A stretch of DNA of 64,000 nt, taken from Rebecca billardiae RCC1528. Taxonomy: Eukaryota > Protista > Haptophyta. The stretch is from NCBI GenBank assembly GCA_965240325.2, contig OZ251228.1, positions 1,488,001 through 1,552,000 on the forward strand, given 5' to 3'. A program made the position numbers and the translations under genes. The notes below the pieces were generated by a model. The model ran no database searches and was not told the DNA's origin. It was given only the letters and a program-made list of their open reading frames with translations. Within the stretch, counting starts at the first letter, position 1. The number at the start of each line of letters is the position of its first letter. Shown here in pieces: positions 524 through 62,336 of the stretch.

Positions 524-1927
524 ATGGCGTACTTTCCCGCCGCGCGGCCCGGCGCCTCCGCACCGCCCATCGTTCGTCTGAGTGCGGCGGGGGACGTCGA
601 GCAGCTGGGAGAACTGCTGCGCCAAGGCGCCGTCGCAGACCTGGATGAGCCGCACGAGTTCGGATCGCCCCTGTGCTGGGCTGCTCAACGAGGCCACACG
701 GAGGCGTGCAGGCTGCTCCTGCGGCACGGCGCGGACCCCAAGTACGTCAACGATGCGGGCATGGGGCCGTTGACCTACGCCGTGCTCGGGGAGGGCACGT
801 CCCACAGCGACGTCGTGTCCCTCCTCCTGGAGCACGGAGTGCGTGACGCGCCCGGTGACGATGGCATGACCTGCCTGATGGCGGCCGCAGGCATGGGGGA
901 GCTGGGGGTGGTGCGCATGCTGTGGGAGGGCGGCGATGCGAACCCAAGCGCCACCTGTGACGGGCTGACAGCTCGAGACCTGGCGCGGCACAATGGCCAC
1001 TCGGAGGTGGCCTCGTTCTTGCGCGACGCTGCAGCGGAGCTCGCAGCCGCCCTCCAGCCCCAGGGGCGCGTGCGCGTGGTCGGCCTCGCGCAGCGCAGCG
1101 ATCTGAACGGCCAGACTGGGACGGTGATCTCGACGGCGCCGCCGGGCGGGAGGGTGGCTGTTCGGCTGGAAGGCGGCGAGCAGGTGCGCATCAAGCCCGA
1201 GGCACTTCGCCCGGCGCGGGCGTCCCGTGCCGCGCCGGCTGAGGCCGCCCCTGCTCCCGCGCCCGGAGAGGCGAGGAACAAGTACAGCGTGTGCTGGCTC
1301 AAGCCGGCGCCCAACGGCGAGACCTACCTGCCGACGCTCTTGTCCGCGGTGGGCTCGCAAGCCGTCTTCAAGAAGGCGTCGGAGAGCAAGCTACGCGAGT
1401 TCGTCGATGGGAACGGCATGAGCCAGCGCAAGTGCTTGATTCCCCAGCTCGTGGGCGAGCCCCTCGTGCTGTGGTTGAAGGTGCAACCGCCGCCATTCAA
1501 CGGGCTGGCGACCGCGCTCGCGAGCTACTGGACCGCCGACGGCCCGAAGGGGGTGTGCGGCACGGCACTGCTGGTGCGCAGCACCCGCAGCGACGGCATG
1601 CCCACAGCGGACGTCTTCGGGCAGGACTCGCTCGCACAGCTCGAGCGCATGCTCTTCTTCATCAACGACGCGACGCTGCCGCACTCCTGCATCAGCCTTC
1701 GCGATCGGAGCGTGCGCGACCAGCTTGTGAAGCTGTGGCCAGCGTACGGGGCCGAATGCGACACGCTCGTGGGTGGCGGCCCGGGCGGCCTGGTGAGGAT
1801 CGACAAGTACGTGGGTGGCAACACGTACGACTGTGTCTGTGCCGACGATGTGGCCGAGTATCTTGCCGATCCAACCAAGTGGGTGGCTTCAAGACGCCCT
1901 GCTGATGCCGAGGACTCCGATGATTGA
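524..1927 (+). CDS. Ankyrin-repeat protein with central KOW/SH3-like small beta domain
   Basis: Ankyrin motifs GSPLCWAAQRGHTEACRLLLRHGAD, GPLTYAV, GMTCLMAAAGMG, GLTARDLARHNGHSEVASFL; then RVRVVGLAQRSDLNGQTGTV..GRVAVRL..VRIKPEAL, a module common in algal proteins; unknown C-terminal domain. Confidence 0.85.
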   Translation: MAYFPAARPGASAPPIVRLSAAGDVEQLGELLRQGAVADLDEPHEFGSPLCWAAQRGHTEACRLLLRHGADPKYVNDAGMGPLTYAVLGEGTSHSDVVSLLLEHGVRDAPGDDGMTCLMAAAGMGELGVVRMLWEGGDANPSATCDGLTARDLARHNGHSEVASFLRDAAAELAAALQPQGRVRVVGLAQRSDLNGQTGTVISTAPPGGRVAVRLEGGEQVRIKPEALRPARASRAAPAEAAPAPAPGEARNKYSVCWLKPAPNGETYLPTLLSAVGSQAVFKKASESKLREFVDGNGMSQRKCLIPQLVGEPLVLWLKVQPPPFNGLATALASYWTADGPKGVCGTALLVRSTRSDGMPTADVFGQDSLAQLERMLFFINDATLPHSCISLRDRSVRDQLVKLWPAYGAECDTLVGGGPGGLVRIDKYVGGNTYDCVCADDVAEYLADPTKWVASRRPADAEDSDD

Positions 1928-2233
1928 TTGATGACCGCTGGCGCTGAGACTGCTGCGCAGACTGGTCGGTCCGGCGGCGGCTGAGAATGAGATTCTTCGA
2001 CGTCGAATATTGATGACGAGTGCTCCGCCTTGCAATGGTGCTGACGATGTCTCACGCGCGGATCCGGGATCGCTAACGTAAAGCTAGCCCGGAATCGGAT
2101 GCGCCTACTCGGTACTCTCTCCGGCTGCTGCTGCCTGCTCTAGGCTGGGGCGGCGGGCGGCTGACTTGTCTGATCGACGAAGCCTGCTGCTGGCAACTGA
2201 ATAATGAAAACTTAGCTTACTTGCTTACAGTTA

Positions 2234-2236
<3 letters not shown>

Positions 2237-2274
<38 letters not shown>
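2237..2274. repeat. (TA)n microsatellite
   Basis: Directly visible. Other (TA)n tracts at 6024-6051, 6201-6218 and 21951-21965. Confidence 0.95.
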
Positions 2275-2276
<2 letters not shown>

Positions 2277-3339
2277 GCACATCCGATCGTCACGCTGAGA
2301 ACTAGTTACGGCACCCCGTCACACGTTACTATTCACTGACATGACTCCGCGTGCACTCCGAGACCGAGTGCAGGCACCCGGCGTGGCCGTGCCCCGACTG
2401 ACCGCCAACGGACACGCCACCGAGCAGTAGCCGCTCAATCAGATCCCCGACGGTCGTAAGTATATATATACCTTATAGTACCTACGATCCCCCGCCGACA
2501 CGCCCGGCCCGCCTGCGACGCCCGGCGGCCGGCATCCACGGTCACGGTCACGGAACGGTCACGGACACGGTCACGGACAGACGGTACGTCGCCTACGAAT
2601 AATCGTCGTCGTACTACGTAGCAGTAAGCAGTCTGCAGTAGTAAGCTAGTCGCTAACTACGGCGCCGCAAAAACTTTGTACGTAGTAATAATAAGTGTAT
2701 GCGCCCCGGGCATCGGCACTGTTACGGTGAACCGGGCTGATCAGCCGTGATGGCCGCGCCGCTTCAATCACTCGCCTTCAACTCAGTGACTTGAAGTTCA
2801 ACCAGCAATAACGGGCAATATATCAACGCCAACGGCCCGCGACAGCGCCCTCGATATATATACATATATGTATATATACACATACTCGGAAGTTAATATA
2901 TTAGCCGTTACTGAGTACGCTGTCTACGCAGCACTACTGGTACGGCTCGAATAACGCCGGAATTATAATAAGTTATATATTGCTCGTCACCGGGCATCCG
3001 CCGACGCGACTATCAACATAGCTAGGTGTAGTGACGCCCTCTCATCAGTCTATGACTGTCGTCAGACTGAGAGTATACTCACTCTGACGAATTCGTGACG
3101 GCGAAAATCGTTGTCGAATGTCGCCGTTGACCGCAACCGAAACGGGCGAAAGCGAGCGAAACCGCGACGTGTACCAATGCTGATCGAAGGCAACACGTGA
3201 TCATGCATGAGCTGCAGCCACACCGAGTCGGCATCGCCCACCCATAATGCACGGAGTATGGCCGTCTTGCTCATGCAGTGTGCTGCCAATGCGGTGCCCA
3301 CGTTTGCAGCAGCTGCGCGGAAAAGCGCCAGCTGCAAGC

Positions 3340-55785: not shown

Positions 55786-55845
55786 TCTCTCTCGATCTCT
55801 CGATCTCTCTCTCTCTCATCTCTCTCTCTCTCTCTCTCTCTAGAT

Positions 55846-55892
<47 letters not shown>
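55786..55892. repeat. (CT)n followed by (GA)n compound microsatellite
   Basis: Directly visible; the two halves are mutually complementary. Confidence 0.9.
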
Positions 55893-55896
<4 letters not shown>

Positions 55897-56563
55897 TCGC
55901 GCGCATATATCATCGTCAGATGACGACGACGACGTCAGATGACGACACCAGCACTGATGCTGAGGATGATATAGCAGCGCTACTCTGGGAGCAGAGCCTT
56001 ATCGTCCCCTGACGAGAAGGTTACATCCGCACACCTACTAGACGCTGATAGTAACACCTAGTACGACGCGGAGGATGATCAGATTCGTCACTGGAGACAA
56101 CGAAACATCCGAAGGCCTCAAACCACACACACACAAATATATATATAATTTAATGTCAAAATATATAGAACACAAAATTAAAAACCAAAATAAAATTCAC
56201 GCACCATTTACGCATGCCAACGGCATCATGATCATTTTTATTACTATCTAAATTTTATTTTGATAGTAACATTGTTATTACTAACTAGTATAATGACGTT
56301 GTTACTGCTATAGTTAGTAGCATTGGTAGCTATCTCGGTAGTGACACTGTCACTACTAAGCTAGATCTATACTTCAATCTATACTTGCTATAATACTATA
56401 CTTCAATCCCGGTCAGTCATCTCAGACATTGATAGATAGATATCCGACTCGAGTCGTCTCGGCGTCTGTCATTCTCTTGAAAGTTATTCTGGCGTCCGCC
56501 GGAACAGTCATCAGCATAGTCTAGCTGCTCTTTCTCTCTGTCTCTAGCTAAGCTGCTACTAGA

Positions 56564-56612
56564 ATCATTATCATCATCATCATCCATCATCATCATCATC
56601 ATCATCATCATC
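56564..56612. repeat. (ATC)n microsatellite
   Basis: Directly visible. Confidence 0.9.
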
Positions 56613-56718
56613 GTCGTCGTCTGAATAGTAAAGCTTGTTACAAAGTACGACTACTAAATATACTAACTTTAGCGTGTATCTGTGAAGTCCTGTCTAACTA
56701 CCCGTTCGACCGCCTATG

Positions 56719-57190
56719 CCCTATCCGGACGGGGCATCGAGCTCGAGCCAGGCCCGCATCCAGACCTGCGTGTAAAGTTGCAAAGTGTAAAGTAGGTCCG
56801 GGAGCCCAGCCGGACTTGTCCGGCCAGTCCGACCGGACGCGTGCCAGCTGCCACCGGGCCCGGCACTCTCCGGCGCCTCCGCCCGGCGCCGGCCGGTCGC
56901 CGGGGCGCCGCGGCCGAGAGGCAGTGCAAAGTTGTAAAGTGTAAATTACATCCGGGAGCCAGGCCGGACCTATCCGGACAGCCGTCCGGCCACGCACGCG
57001 TGCGGGCTGTGCCGACGCGCCGCGCCGGCCGGCTGCCGGGCGCACGAGGGCGTGTATGACAGTGTGAAAAAGTAAATCCGGGCGCCTCCGGACGGGGCAT
57101 CGCGCGCCGCGCAAGCTGCTTGGCCCAGCAACCCCCCGTAAAAGTTGTAAAGTGTAAAGTAAGTCCGGGGCTTTCGCGGGTCCAATCCGG
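56719..57190 (-). repeat. Diverged inverted copies of the 59.3-61.7 kb satellite unit
   Basis: Four TGTAAAGTTGTAAAGTGTAAAGTA..TCCGG-like boxes (~56771, 56924, 57053, 57138) with flanking GC segments reverse-complementary to the main array. Confidence 0.88.
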
Positions 57191-57228
57191 GATCCCGCAG
57201 CCCGAGCGGCGGCGCGATGTTCGCCGCC

Positions 57229-59240
57229 ATGGTCGATGGTGTTCGCAAGCACGTTCAGAAGCCGCCCGCCCTCGACGACGCGATCTGCACGTGCGCGCGT
57301 TGGTCAGAGCACACGCGTGACGTGGGTGAGTCGGGGGACTACCCACTACGAAGCAAAGTAGAGCGTGAAGCAAGGTAGAGTGTGTTTCCGCGTGCGCGCT
57401 CGGGCAGCTCTGCTGTGACCCCTCGGCCACGTCGTGATGTGTGCGTCCGCGCGCACGGCCACGCCAGCGTGGCCAGTGCGCTTCCTCTTCAACGACACCA
57501 ACGAGCTCGCCCTGGCGCACAACGTTGGCAGCAGCGCCGTGACTACACGGCTGCTGGTGGTGCGCGTGTCCGGTTGGCCACACCCTCGTGACTCTGCGGC
57601 TGCGCGCAGAAGCAGCGCCACCGGCGTGCTGCTGCCTGCCGGCATGCTGGTGGCGCCCGCGCCCGCGCCGCCGCCGCCATTTTGTGACCGTCCCACAGTG
57701 CGCCCCGCTGCATGCGCCTTGTGGCGCGCGTCCGGTTGGCCACAGCCTCGTGACTCTGCGGCTCTGCGGCTGCGCGCACAAGCAGCGCCACCGGCGTGCT
57801 GCCGCTGCCGGCATGCTGATGGCGCCCGCGCCCGCGCCGCCGCCGCCATTTTGTGACCTTCCCGCGCCGTGCGCCCCGCTGCATGCGCCGTCTGGGGCGC
57901 GTCCGGCTGACCGCAGCCTCGTGACTCTGCGGCTGCGCGCGCAAGCATCGCCACTGGCGTGCTGCCGCTGCTCGCATGCTGATGGCGCCCGCGCCCGCGC
58001 CGCCGCCGCCATTTTGTGACCTTCCCGCGCGGTGCGCCCCGCTGCATGCGCCGTCTGGGGCGCGTCCAGTTAGCCACAGCCTCGTGACTCTGCGTCTCTG
58101 CGGCTGCACGCGCATCTACCGCGGCGGGCTGCGCCTGCTGTTCACGGCCAAGGCGGACGGCGAACCCCGTACATCCCCGCCGCGGTCGTTGCCACCGCCG
58201 GCGACGGCGTCGTGCGCTGCGAGTGGCTTGCGCGCCTGCCCGCGTGGCACGCCCTCCGCACCCGCACTGTGCCCGCGGCTTGGCCCACACGCGTGCACAA
58301 CGAGGCGGTCGAATGGGCAGCGCGTGCGTAGACGGCACCTGCGCCGTCGGGTCAGCGCCGCCCGTGCGCCGGGCGTGCGCACCTTCCCGCCTCGCCAGCT
58401 GGCGCGCGAACCGCCCTCGCCGCGTGGCTAAACGAGCAGCTCGGCTCGCGCGGCGCGGGCGAGCCGATCAGTGCGCGCCCGGCGGCGCCGGGCGCTGGCC
58501 GCCGATTACGCGCGTGTACGCGGGGCGCTCGCCGGGTCTACTCGCGACGTGCTCGACGGCGAGTCGATGGTGTGACTACAAGCGCAGTGAGCACTGGCGG
58601 CGGATTGTCTTCTACTTCGCCAAGCTAGACGGCATCGACCTCTGCTGCGTGGACGACGCGTGTGTCCACGCGCACGGCCGCGCAGGCGCAGCTGCCGTGC
58701 GCCTTCGTGGCTTCCTTTTGACGGTGCCGACGGGCTCGCCCCCTCACCACGCGTGGCCTGCGCGGCCGTGCAGCGCGGGCACGGTGGTTCGCGCGGCAAG
58801 GCGCCGGTTGCGCGCTCGCAGCAGTTTGCAGCCCTCCGGCGCGCGGCGTTTGCTGCAGCGCCGTGACCACGCGGCTGTGGGCCGCGCCACTGGTGCTGCT
58901 GGCCGCCGCGGCCATGCCGCCGCCGCCATGATACGACCTTTTCGCGCTGTGCGCCCCGCTACACACAGCATGCGTGGACGACCGCGCTGCGCCTCGCGCC
59001 AAATGGCGCCCAGCAATACGGATGCGCACTGCACACTGCGTGCAGCGGGTTGAACGGCCCTGGCTGTGGCGTGCAACGTGCGCCGTAGAGGCGTGACTCG
59101 CCAGCCCGCGGCGGGCGTAGCGCGCGCACGCACGGGCGAGCAGCACTACTGCGTGTTGCTCAGCCGCGCCCGCGCCGCGCCATCGGTAGGTGGTGGCGCC
59201 CTCGACCGGTATCGAATCGCCCTCCCTCACCTACCTCCCT
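57229..59240 (+). pseudogene. Possible cryptic or decaying spliced gene inside the repeat structure
   Basis: GCCGCCATGG start; exon 57229-57325, GTGAGT donor, CAG acceptor at 57467, in-phase exon 57468-57559 (AWPVRFLFNDTNELALAHNVGSSAVTTRLLV), GTGCGC donor. Later protein-like pieces IYRGGLRLLFTAKADG and WCDYKRSEHWRRIVFYFAKLDGIDLCCVDD cannot be cleanly joined. Confidence 0.35.
57562..58112. repeat. ~165-bp tandem repeat (3 copies plus a partial)
   Basis: GCGCCCGCGCCCGCGCCGCCGCCGCCATTTTGTGACC and CCTCGTGACTCTGCG recur at ~163-169-bp spacing. Confidence 0.92.
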
Positions 59241-59306
59241 CGCCCGGGCGGGTCGATCGCGGGCGCCGGCATCGCGATCAAATCGCGTCCGGCCGCGTCG
59301 TCCCGC

Positions 59307-61717
59307 CCGGACTTACTTTACACTTTACAACTTTACAGGCCCTCTCGCGCCCGCGGCCCGGCGGCGGCGCGGCGGCCGGCGGGCCAGCATGCGTCCGGTC
59401 GGACTGGCCGGACATGTCCGGCTGGGCTCCCGGACCTACTTTACACTTTACAACTTTACACGCCGGGCTGGGTGCTGGCCTGGCTCGTGCTCGATGCCCC
59501 GTCCGGACGTGCGCTCCCGGACCTACTTTACACTTTATACAACTTTACAGGCCCTCTCGCGCCCGCGGCCGGCCGGCCGGCGGCGCGGCGGCCAGCATGC
59601 GTCCGGTCGGACTGGCCGGACATGTCCGGCTGGGCTCCCGGACCTACTTTACACTTTACAACTTTACACGCCGGGCTGGGTGCTGGCCTGGCTCGTGCTC
59701 GATGCCCCGTCCGGACGTGCGCTCCCGGACTTACTTTACACTTTACAACTTTACAGGCCCTCTCGGCCTCTCGCGCCCGCGGCCGGCGGCGCGGCGGCCA
59801 GCACGCGTCCGGTCGGACTGGCCGGACATGTCCGGCCGGGCTCCCGGACCTACTTTACACTTTACAACTTTACACGCCGGGCTGGGTGCTGGCCTGGCTC
59901 ATGGTCGATGCCCCGTCCGGACGTGCGCTCCCGGACCTACTTTACACTTTACAACTTTACAGGCCCTCTCGCGCCCGCGGCCGCGGCGGCGCGACGGCCA
60001 GCATGCGTCCGGTCGGACTGGCCGGACATGTCCGGCTGGGCTCCCGGACCTACTTTACACTTTACAACTTTACACGCCGGGCTGGGTGCTGGCCTGGCTC
60101 GTGCTCGATGCCCCGTCCGGACGTGCGCTTCCGGACTTACTTTACACTTTACAACTTTACAGGCCCTCTCGCGCCCGCGGCCGGCGGCGCGGCGGCCACG
60201 GCATGCGTCCGGTCGGACTGGCCGGACATGTCCGGCTGGGCTCCCGGACCTACTTTACACTTTACAACTTTACACGCCGGGCTGGGTGCTGGCCTGGCTC
60301 GTGCTCGATGCCCCGTCCGGACGTGCGCTCCCGGACCTACTTTACACTTTACAACTTTACAGGCCCTCTCGCGCCCGCGGCCGCGGCGGCGCGACGGCCA
60401 GCATGCGTCCGGTCGGACTGGCCGGACATGTCCGGCTGGGCTCCCGGACCTACTTTACACTTTACAACTTTACACGCCGGGCTGGGTGCTGGCCTGGCTC
60501 GTGCTCGATGCCCCGTCCGGACGTGCGCTCCCGGACCTACTTTACACTTTATACAACTTTACAGGCCCTCTCGCGCCCGCGGCCGGCCGGCCGGCGGCGC
60601 GGCGGCCAGCATGCGTCCGGTCGGACTGGCCGGACATGTCCGGCTGGGCTCCCGGACCTACTTTACACTTTACAACTTTACACGCCGGGCTAGGTGCTGG
60701 CCTGGCTCGTGCTCGATGCCCCGTCCGGACGTGCGCTCCCGGACTTACTTTACACTTTACAACTTTACAGGCCCTCTCGCGCCCGCGGCCGGCGGCGCGG
60801 CGGCCAGCACGCGTCCGGTCGGACTGGCCGGACATGTCCGGCTGGGCTCCCGGACCTACTTTACACTTTACAACTTTACACGCCGGGCTGGGTGCTGGCC
60901 TGGCTCGTGCTCGATGCCCCGTCCGGACGTGCGCTCCCGGACCTACTTTACACTTTATACAACTTTACAGGCCCTCTCGCGCCCGCGGCCGGCCGGCCGG
61001 CGGCGCGGCGGCCAGCATGCGTCCGGTCGGACTGGCCGGACATGTCCGGCTGGGCTCCCGGACCTACTTTACACTTTACAACTTTACACGCCGGGCTGGG
61101 TGCTGGCCTGGCTCGTGCTCGATGCCCCGTCCGGACGTGCGCTCCCGGACTTACTTTACACTTTACAACTTTACAGGCCCTCTCGCGCCCGCGGCCGGCG
61201 GCGCGGCGGCCAGCACGCGTCCGGTCGGACTGGCCGGACATGTCCGGCTGGGCTCCCGGACCTACTTTACACTTTACAACGTTACACGCCGGGCTGGGTG
61301 CTGGCCTGGCTCGTGCTCGATGCCCCGTCCGGATCTGCGCTCCCGGACCTACTTTACACTTTACAACTTTACAGGCCCTCTCGCCCCCGCGGCCGGCGGC
61401 GCGGCGGCCAGCATGCGTCCGGTCGGACTGGCCGGACATGTCCGGCTGGGCTCCCGGATCTACTTTACACTTTACAACTTTACACGCCGCGGGCTGGGTG
61501 CTGGCCTGGCTCATGGTCGATGCCCCGTCCGGACGTGCGCTCCCGGACTTACTTTACACTTTACAACTTTACAGGCCCTCTCGCGCCCGCGGCCGGCGGC
61601 GCGGCGGCCAGCATGCGTCCGGTCGGACTGGCCGGACATGTCCGGCTGGGCTCCCGGACCTACTTTACACTTTACAACTTTACACGCCGGGCTGGGTGCT
61701 GGCCTGGCTCATGGTCG
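59307..61717 (+). repeat. Satellite-like tandem array, 12 units of 198-208 bp, each with two ACTTTACACTTTACAACTTTACA boxes
   Basis: Palindrome CCGGACATGTCCGG at 59408, 59616, 59822, 60022, 60222, 60422, 60630, 60828, 61036, 61234, 61432 and 61632; units are near-identical. Confidence 0.97.
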
Positions 61718-62336
61718 CGCCAGCCAGATCAGTCGCGCGCGCGCGGCGGCACTGCGCGCGCGCGGGGCGCGCGTGCCTTTCCTAGAAACTTCCGCAGAGC
61801 CGCGAGAAGGTTACACTTTACATAGTGACAGGGCTGGACCAGGCTTACTAGTTACACATAGGAGACCACGACGTTACATATAGGAGGCATAGGCTACATT
61901 TCTACTATACGGCTTTTCTGGGGGGTGTAACCTTCTCGTGACAGGACCACCACCGAGCAGAGTACTTCTGCGGCCGGGCCTGGCACTGAGCGGCAGCCGG
62001 GGCGCCCTTGCGGCTTGCAGCGGCACGACTGCGGTCGTCCCTTCGCTCTTCACGCCATTCCGCTGAGGAGAATGGGGAGAACAGCAAAGCGTCAGGTGCT
62101 TATGGCTCATGTCACGAGCAGGCGCAGCACGACGATGATGAAAGTAGTTAGTGCCGACGTTGGTCGTTGAACCGCGTAACGTCGTTGTCGGTCATGGCCA
62201 CTTGCGGCGCCGAACTCCTTTCTGGCAGCAATGGTGGCCTTGGGGCGCGCCGAGCAGCGACGCCCGTTTTCCACGTCATCGACCGGCGTCGGCGCCGTTG
62301 CCATCATCATCGCCCGCTCGCAGAGTCGCAGCCTCC

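Follow-up and report, generated by a model that had tools for sequence, protein, structure and literature searches.

We analysed a 64,000-nucleotide stretch of Rebecca billardiae RCC1528 (the window; C11:1488001-1552000), taken from a 72-Mb, 41-contig, very GC-rich assembly of this haptophyte-type alga. We found that a 5,958-bp unit at window positions 55997-61954 belongs to a new transposon family, which is unusual in its unequal arms, in a satellite that is confined to the element and in the gene remnant at its centre. The family has spread recently, and the whole unit inserts at unrelated sites with an 8-bp staggered cut of the target. On this evidence the element carries no intact gene and is non-autonomous. 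We consider it likely that these copies form a young family of non-autonomous DNA transposons with a foldback-like build, which descends in decayed form from repeat elements of this genome that carry a primase.

The original prediction, made from the letters of the window, had proposed a structure bounded by a perfect 14-bp inverted pair, and had read it as either a non-autonomous element whose right subterminal region was amplified into a satellite or a chromosomal structural locus. We confirmed the pair: the 14-mer ACGAGAAGGTTACA is perfect at 56012-56025 on the plus strand and at 61926-61939 on the minus strand. However, when the window was compared by blastn with the other copies in the genome, homology started at 55997 and stopped at 61954 in every copy compared, so that the true ends of the element lie 15-16 bp outside the pair. 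The termini read CCTTATC on the left and CCACCACC on the right. The terminal inverted repeat (TIR) is 29 bp long and imperfect, with 21 of 29 positions complementary in an ungapped comparison, and its perfect 14-bp core sits 15 bp from each end.

The genome-wide BLASTN search that had been suggested as a check did recover other copies and their target-site duplications (TSDs), but no autonomous partner with the same ends. The family comprises 10 full and 3 truncated copies, with 12 left ends and 10 right ends, and one and the same set of loci was matched whether the search used the satellite unit, either end or the centre. A perfect 8-bp TSD, different at each locus, was present in 8/8 copies with both flanks readable. 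The copies, with their lengths and the TSDs that were read, were as follows.

C19, full copy, 5,344 bp, TSD CTGCGCGC
C33, full copy, 5,544 bp, TSD GGCCCGCG
C30, full copy, 5,552 bp
C11 (the window element), full copy, 5,958 bp, TSD GAGCAGAG
C37, full copy, 6,758 bp, TSD AGCAGGCC
C27, full copy, 6,887 bp, TSD CGGAATTC
C5a (first on C5), full copy, 8,633 bp
C22a (first on C22), full copy, 8,678 bp, TSD GCGGTCTG
C22b (second on C22), full copy, 9,274 bp, TSD GCTACTGT
C5b (second on C5), full copy, 11,861 bp, TSD GCGCGGAC
C36, C25 and C17, truncated copies, incomplete
C21 and C3, short end-like fragments

The flanks of the copies were unique, mostly GC-rich and mutually unrelated, except for one 367-bp match between two of them. 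Inside the element the copies were nearly the same. Leftward of the right array, the non-satellite DNA (3.29 kb) was 99.76-100% identical among C11, C33, C19, C27 and C37 and 99.2% identical to C22a, and the centre was 99-100% identical in 11 copies. We also observed post hoc that six of 12 family loci (C33, C37, C30, C36 and the two on C5) lie at 0.40-0.52 of their contig; the flanks there are unlike repeat islands.

Between its two TSDs the window copy is laid out as a pair of flanking domains, a pair of satellite arms and a middle domain, with the following features in window coordinates.

55989..55996, left TSD GAGCAGAG, identical to 61955-61962
55997..56025, plus strand, left TIR, 29 bp, with the core ACGAGAAGGTTACA at 56012-56025; copy homology begins exactly at 55997
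56026..56722, plus strand, left flanking domain, AT-rich (30-45% GC), with an (ATC)n microsatellite at 56564-56612; it has no counterpart at the right end
56723..57227, minus strand, left arm of about 2.5 degenerate satellite dimers, inverted, recognised by complementarity to right-arm units
57228..59305, plus strand, middle domain, 99-100% identical among copies
57592..58111, plus strand, 163-bp tandem repeat, 3.1 copies by Tandem Repeats Finder (TRF), with a further diverged copy near 58900-58975
about 58092..58840, plus strand, gene remnant with a frameshift, which probably corresponds to the C-terminal part of a primase of the PrimPol/UL52 type, located by tblastn of the proteins P0003 and P0004
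59306..61717, plus strand, right arm, satellite of 24 boxes, by TRF and box scan
61718..61925, plus strand, right flanking domain, inside which the TIR core recurs at 61802-61815, oriented like the left end
61926..61954, minus strand, right TIR, made of the 14-bp core at 61926-61939 and 15 outer bp ending in CCACCACC; copy homology stops at 61954
61955..61962, right TSD GAGCAGAG

The two flanking domains, 697 bp on the left and 208 bp on the right, are mutually unrelated. A third TIR-like copy had also been predicted, and it is indeed present on the plus strand with one mismatch, at 61802-61815 rather than at 61803-61816; the three sites of the 14-mer compare with 0.05 expected. Together with the right core this copy allows the stretch 61801-61940 to pair as a 14-19-bp stem (z = -2.0). 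Outside the element, 100 bp upstream of the insertion site, the window carries an inverted microsatellite pair at 55786-55892, in which (TC)n is followed directly by (GA)n.

We further studied the satellite that makes up both arms. Its unit of about 200 bp consists of two subunits, each about 100 bp long and made up of a triple CTTTACA box and a GC-rich linker that includes the palindrome CCGGACATGTCCGG, and the units are arranged with a 406-bp higher-order period; TRF described the right array (59306-61717) either as 11.9 copies of period 200 or as 5.9 copies of period 406. A scan for the 22-nt triple box with at most 3 mismatches returned, against 0 expected, three sites on the minus strand of the left arm (56771, 56925 and 57138) and 21 on the plus strand of the right arm. 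Three more right-arm boxes with a 2-nt insertion bring the total of this arm to 24. A fourth left-arm box, strongly diverged, was read in the sequence, and the boxes of this arm thus lie at 56771-56792, 56925-56946, about 57060-57080 and 57138-57159. The four diverged minus-strand boxes and the 24 plus-strand boxes of the original prediction are therefore both accounted for. The arms are unequal: the left one is 0.5 kb long and degenerate, and the right one is 2.4 kb long and homogeneous. Over 56723-56852 the complementarity of the left arm to right-arm units is 91-93%, and for the whole of 56723-57227 it is about 68-70%.

The strand polarity of the boxes is absolute. All 69 plus-strand TTTACA sites fall in the right arm, and all 6 minus-strand sites fall in the left arm. 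Of the nine GTTACA sites in the window, seven fall within the element; those of both TIR cores are among them, as are three others in the right flanking domain, at 61810, 61851 and 61873. Read inward from either end, the core comes first and is followed by motifs of opposite orientation, which are 3 GTTACA and 69 TTTACA on the right and 6 TTTACA, on the other strand, on the left.

The satellite was found only within the family. In a genome-wide search, all 128 matches to the satellite unit were inside family copies or family fragments. The right array contained 18, 20, 20, 24, 32 and 42 boxes in six copies, and because these copies are 99.2-100% identical elsewhere, the length of the array changes faster than point mutations build up. 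In addition, at 61802 the box-like sequence TTACACTTTACA is fused to the internal copy of the core, an arrangement that suggests growth of the satellite through tandem duplication of the subterminal region. We also scanned metagenomes with the 22-nt box and obtained four contigs, all of them unrelated and one of them bacterial (with PPDK and MnmE genes). Two of the four, related 55%-GC metagenome contigs of the Joint Genome Institute (JGI; L058:1400-1626 and L059:1-300), have CTTTACA/TGTAAAG heptads in a short inverted cluster close to one of their ends, and show no other similarity to the element.

The centre was then analysed for coding capacity. None of the ten open reading frames (ORFs) of 129-432 aa in the non-satellite part of the element had a Pfam domain, nor did any ORF of at least 90 aa in the middle domain (57228-59305). 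The codon-phase GC spread in the centre was at most 0.18, compared with 0.34-0.46 in real exons of the same window. The central tandem repeat proved to be real, with a period of 163 bp instead of the predicted 165, and this unit length is not a multiple of 3. The middle domain, about 2.1 kb long, also holds an internal diverged direct duplication (57419-57840 versus 58640-59178). An open frame of 321 codons at 58088-59050 is retained in 8 of 11 copies and measures 310-335 codons in the other three, and a 246-aa protein from this frame was called in a Logan assembly.

The cryptic gene that had been proposed for the centre turned out to be gene-derived material, though not an intact gene: it is a frameshifted remnant related to a multi-copy family. 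Window 58112-58710 had 67-69% DNA identity over about 600 bp to at least 19 other loci of the genome, and a protein-level search placed these sister loci in stop-free frames of 479-603 aa belonging to several subfamilies. Examples are C7:915954-916537, C10:603428-604011, C10:616934-617517 and C14:1057921-1058504, and further C23:397393-397976, C16:1013623-1014240, C12:91774-92391 and C5:1118901-1119521. Exhaustive phmmer identified two relatives outside the genome, P0003 (281 aa) and P0004 (114 aa), with P0003 originating in Logan assemblies made from other sequencing runs (SRR24310115 and SRR24310122; contigs L060 and L061; 70% GC). In tblastn, P0003 aligned to the element in two reading frames, with a stop in the homology: residues 130-263 matched 58367-58738 (E 3e-19) and residues 23-227 matched 58092-58607 (E 3e-11), indicating that the window copy is a frameshifted remnant. 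P0004 matched the remnant at E 2e-12. Word-indexed protein searches with the 321-aa frame and with P0003 recovered only the queries themselves, and phmmer of P0003 against the PDB found nothing.

In alignment A1, P0003, P0004 and the window piece have in common an invariant CHC2 pattern, C-x6-H...CC-x-D-x2-C, at columns C206, H213, C230/C231, D233 and C236. Within the remnant this zinc-finger pattern lies near 58560-58680, and a motif-III-like stretch lies near 58120-58180 in a different frame. In P0003 a D-x2-IY-x3-LRL-x2-TSK stretch was read about 150 residues upstream of the Cys/His pattern. We take this stretch with its downstream zinc finger to have the spacing and wording of motif III of the archaeo-eukaryotic primases (AEPs) and of the UL52-type finger of PrimPol and giant-virus primases. 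Further, the language-model feature neighbours of P0003 in the Atlas were clusters of PF03121 (Herpes_UL52) and PF23162 (AEP_C962R), with a score of 0.95 and agreement among 9 of the 10 top matches. Judged from these sequence features, the central remnant is probably derived from a primase of the PrimPol/UL52/giant-virus type, and the sister loci are probably a multi-copy gene family of PrimPol-type primases. Upstream, on the N-terminal side, nothing in the window was homologous to P0003 or a Pfam family, in searches that were not specifically aimed at catalytic motifs I and II. Two side observations concern the Logan contigs. P0003 is flanked on both sides on L060 and L061 by repeats that resemble, by eye and unaligned, the 163-bp unit of the window, and the end of one P0003-bearing contig has TCCCCTGACAAGAGG, which is faintly like the left end of the element.

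We propose that a DDE-type transposase supplied in trans, which would make 8-bp staggered cuts in the target, moves the element. This transposase would recognise the GGTTACA-containing TIR core, and the TTACA-type boxes, which run in the same direction relative to each end, may offer putative extra binding sites. Tandem duplication of this subterminal binding region would have given rise to the satellite, whose length would change by slippage or unequal exchange. The middle domain would hold what is left of a gene of which intact versions persist at the at least 19 sister loci, and the family would thus be a decayed offshoot of primase-carrying repeats. The part of this proposal that concerns a non-autonomous element with an amplified right subterminal region had already been put forward in the original prediction, and it is now supported by the TSDs in 8/8 copies, the lack of a coding signal, the confinement of the satellite to the family and the variation in array length.

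Several results weigh against this proposal. Concerning the mover, genome searches with the left end, the right end, the 14-mer and the 12-mer for an autonomous partner with shared ends gave only the family and the C21, C17 and C3 fragments. The hAT domain PF05699 occurs in the genome at a single site, C17:765118, which has a stop and is unlinked to the family, and the MULE domain PF10551 occurs at C23:328244 (in a 1051-aa frame) and at C10:1918801, with no TIR core near either. Of the 15 outermost positions, only 7 are complementary between the two ends, and the termini CCTTATC and CCACCACC are unlike those of hAT elements. Concerning the primase, the recognition value of P0003 in the Atlas was low, so that its neighbours are moderate evidence only, and the window's own piece was not recognised there. 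The window ORFs, P0001, P0003 and P0004 had no Pfam match even at E up to 10, the PF03121 matches in the genome coincided with none of the sister loci, and the AlphaFold2 model of P0003 was unusable (pLDDT 36).

For the placement among known superfamilies, hAT elements have short TIRs of the YARNG type at their very ends. An 8-bp TSD is not exclusive to hAT and is found as well in P, Merlin, Zisupton, Novosib and some MULE elements, although the TSD of MULEs is usually 9-11 bp and rarely 8. The asymmetric ends also led us to try a Replitron/HUH reading, which was rejected because the terminal repeats of Replitrons are direct and regular TSDs are absent from them.

A different reading, which we regard as unlikely, places the family in a so far undescribed class of eukaryotic mobile elements. 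The autonomous members of this class would have a PrimPol-type primase as their only gene, set between inverted arrays of iterons, and movement would depend on that machinery instead of a classical transposase of a known superfamily; it could proceed by primase-primed replication of an excised or copied intermediate, with the help of some other integrating activity. In favour of this reading, the centre holds the remnant of a gene that is intact, in frames of 479-603 aa, at the sister loci, no classical transposase with matching ends was found in the assembly, and the mobility of the window family is proven by its TSDs. A fixed 8-bp duplication is, however, the signature of a transposase or integrase, the identity of the primase is unsupported by any profile, and the sister loci are only 67-69% identical to the remnant in DNA over about 600 bp. 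To our knowledge, AEP primases have no strand-transfer activity. Our literature search found no eukaryotic transposon defined by a PrimPol-type primase. That the family is a decayed but mobile member of a primase-only class of selfish elements, with its 8-bp TSDs as the first proof that this class transposes, is a minority possibility in our judgement. Much less probable is that the element is autonomous, with an unrecognised mover protein encoded in the centre, for example by the 321-codon frame at 58088-59050. The retention of this frame in 8 of 11 copies and the 246-aa Logan protein called from it speak for such a protein, but the copies are too young for the conservation of the frame to be meaningful, the frame is mostly Arg/Ala-rich wrong-frame text, the P0003 homology switches frame and contains a stop, and the region has neither a codon-phase GC signal nor a domain.

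Two further explanations deny that the 5.9-kb unit is a transposon at all, and we give both next to no weight. The inverted pair of cores at the right end, which are 110 bp apart, is MITE-like (resembling a miniature inverted-repeat transposable element) and able to form a stem, so that an independent small MITE at 61802-61939 and an independent satellite could have come to lie side by side by coincidence. The internal copy GCGAGAAGGTTACA was nevertheless found genome-wide only inside right ends of the family, no solo 138-bp unit was seen, every satellite match was inside a family copy, and the TSDs flank whole units of 5.3-11.9 kb. Independent MITEs formed by the 14-mers, and the satellite elsewhere without them, had been named in advance as the finding that would speak against a single element; they were not seen, and the 14-mer, GCGAGAAGGTTACA and the satellite occurred only in the family. 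The 14-mer and 12-mer cores likewise appeared genome-wide only in family copies and in one C21 fragment, with one-mismatch hits at chance level (29 versus 22 in the control). The position of six of the 12 loci in the same relative part of their contigs, noted post hoc, might point instead to segmental duplication or gene conversion of a structural locus, such as a centromere-associated repeat. In every copy the homology breaks off at an identical base, on the left as on the right, and gives way to unrelated, unique and GC-rich flanks, and each copy has a different perfect 8-bp direct repeat. Unrelated flanks together with locus-specific 8-bp repeats exclude segmental duplication and a structural locus, and the chromosomal alternative of the original prediction was dropped accordingly. 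A reading as a centromere or an island of transposable elements was rejected on the same unique, GC-rich flanks.

The young non-autonomous family that we favour was next compared with known elements. The closest known architecture is that of Tetris and other foldback (FB-like) elements. Tetris, a foldback element of Drosophila, combines TIRs that contain tandem repeats of 220 bp with a middle domain that is non-coding and with TSDs of 8-9 bp (Dias et al. 2014, PMC4079207). As in Tetris, a flanking domain is followed by inverted tandem repeats of about 200-220 bp and then by a non-coding middle, the element is apparently non-autonomous, and the TSD is of similar length (8 bp here and 8-9 bp there). 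Variation of the repeat number between near-identical copies and the role of the element as a birthplace of satellites are further likenesses (PMC4079207). Foldback elements have near-equal, highly similar long arms that can fold back; the arms of our element measure 0.5 and 2.4 kb, with 68-70% complementarity overall, and the flanking domains of our element are unrelated except for the 29-bp imperfect TIR. Moreover, the satellite is still confined to the element, the middle domain has a gene remnant, and the host is a haptophyte-type alga; the likeness is architectural, and none in sequence is expected.

The nearest taxonomic comparators are two elements of the haptophyte Tisochrysis lutea. 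Ace, a hAT element, has 8-bp TSDs and many non-autonomous derivatives, and Shanks, of the hATv type, has a 7-bp TSD and non-identical 26-bp TIRs; both were recently active, and their non-autonomous forms are 0.2-3 kb long, with satellite arms unreported (PMC10138859). Our element resembles Ace in its 8-bp TSD and Shanks in its non-identical TIRs, whereas their ends read CAGTG and TAGGG, and those of our element CCTTATC and CCACCACC. The Shanks-like end TAGGGGGGCCAAAC that does occur in this genome is part of a separate insertion inside C5b and not an end of the element. CACTA (En/Spm) and Ac/Ds-type elements have repeated subterminal motifs that bind transposase and keep a fixed orientation relative to each end. 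Such oriented subterminal motifs are also seen here, and those families provide the model for the putative binding of the boxes. CACTA elements have 3-bp TSDs and CACTA ends. Neither of these is present in our element, whose motif region has grown into a 2.4-kb satellite. With regard to the centre, the remnant, P0003 and P0004 resemble primases of the PrimPol/UL52 type and the C962R type of nucleocytoplasmic large DNA viruses (NCLDV) in their C-x6-H...C-x4-C pattern, and P0003 also in its upstream motif-III-like stretch, but they differ from these primases in having no profile match, and the window copy in being frameshifted.

The longer copies were considered as hidden autonomous forms, and this was rejected: their readable extra DNA consisted of a tandem repeat, nested small transposons and an insertion with a hATv-like end, without a transposase gene. 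The insertions in C27 and C22a fall at positions equal to window 56376 and 56660, respectively. The C27 copy contains a nested 1,332-bp element (C27:86341-87668) with a 5-bp TSD (TCTAT) and TIRs that begin with TGTCYGAGGGAATGAAG, followed by an internal palindrome. The C22a copy contains a nested 508-bp MITE (C22:80463-80971) of the Tc1/mariner type, with a TA duplication and TIRs that begin with CAGGCAATCGCGGGC. An insertion of about 4.7 kb in C22b holds five copies of a 409-bp tandem repeat (97% matches; C22:1094459-1096501) and has no Pfam domain, and the insertion into the satellite of C5b (C5:1800607 onward) begins with TAGGGGGGCCAAACCGCCC and has the end TAGGGGGGCCAAAC, which resembles the Shanks (hATv) end.

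Three other places in the genome deserve mention as possible or partial relatives of the family. From C21:1124608 onward (L055:1501-1700 and 1830-3114), a 200-bp fragment has the family's first 40 bases and is divergent thereafter; beside it lies a minus-strand gene whose product, read by eye, we take to be a lipocalin of the violaxanthin de-epoxidase type (VDE-like). On C35, two same-strand CAGAAGGTTACA sites lie 10.5 kb apart (114565 and 125124) in a variant identical to that of the C17 fragment, and these may be family relatives. A match at C3:2341758-2341894, 81% identical to the right flanking domain, may be another.

Few transposon families have been characterised in haptophytes, and the family described here comes with exact ends, TSDs and 13 mapped copies, so that it can directly serve the annotation of genomes and mark recent activity. 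The birth and resizing of a satellite inside a transposon can also be seen here in a clean, young case, in which no free arrays have formed yet. If the remnant is confirmed as a primase, the family would tie the unexplained primase-only repeats of the same genome to a proven signature of transposition, and the way in which those repeats move would become testable. Should the less likely class of primase-only elements be the true one, this would mean a new mechanism of integration, or a new partnership between a primase-bearing replicon and an integrase of the host or of a transposable element.

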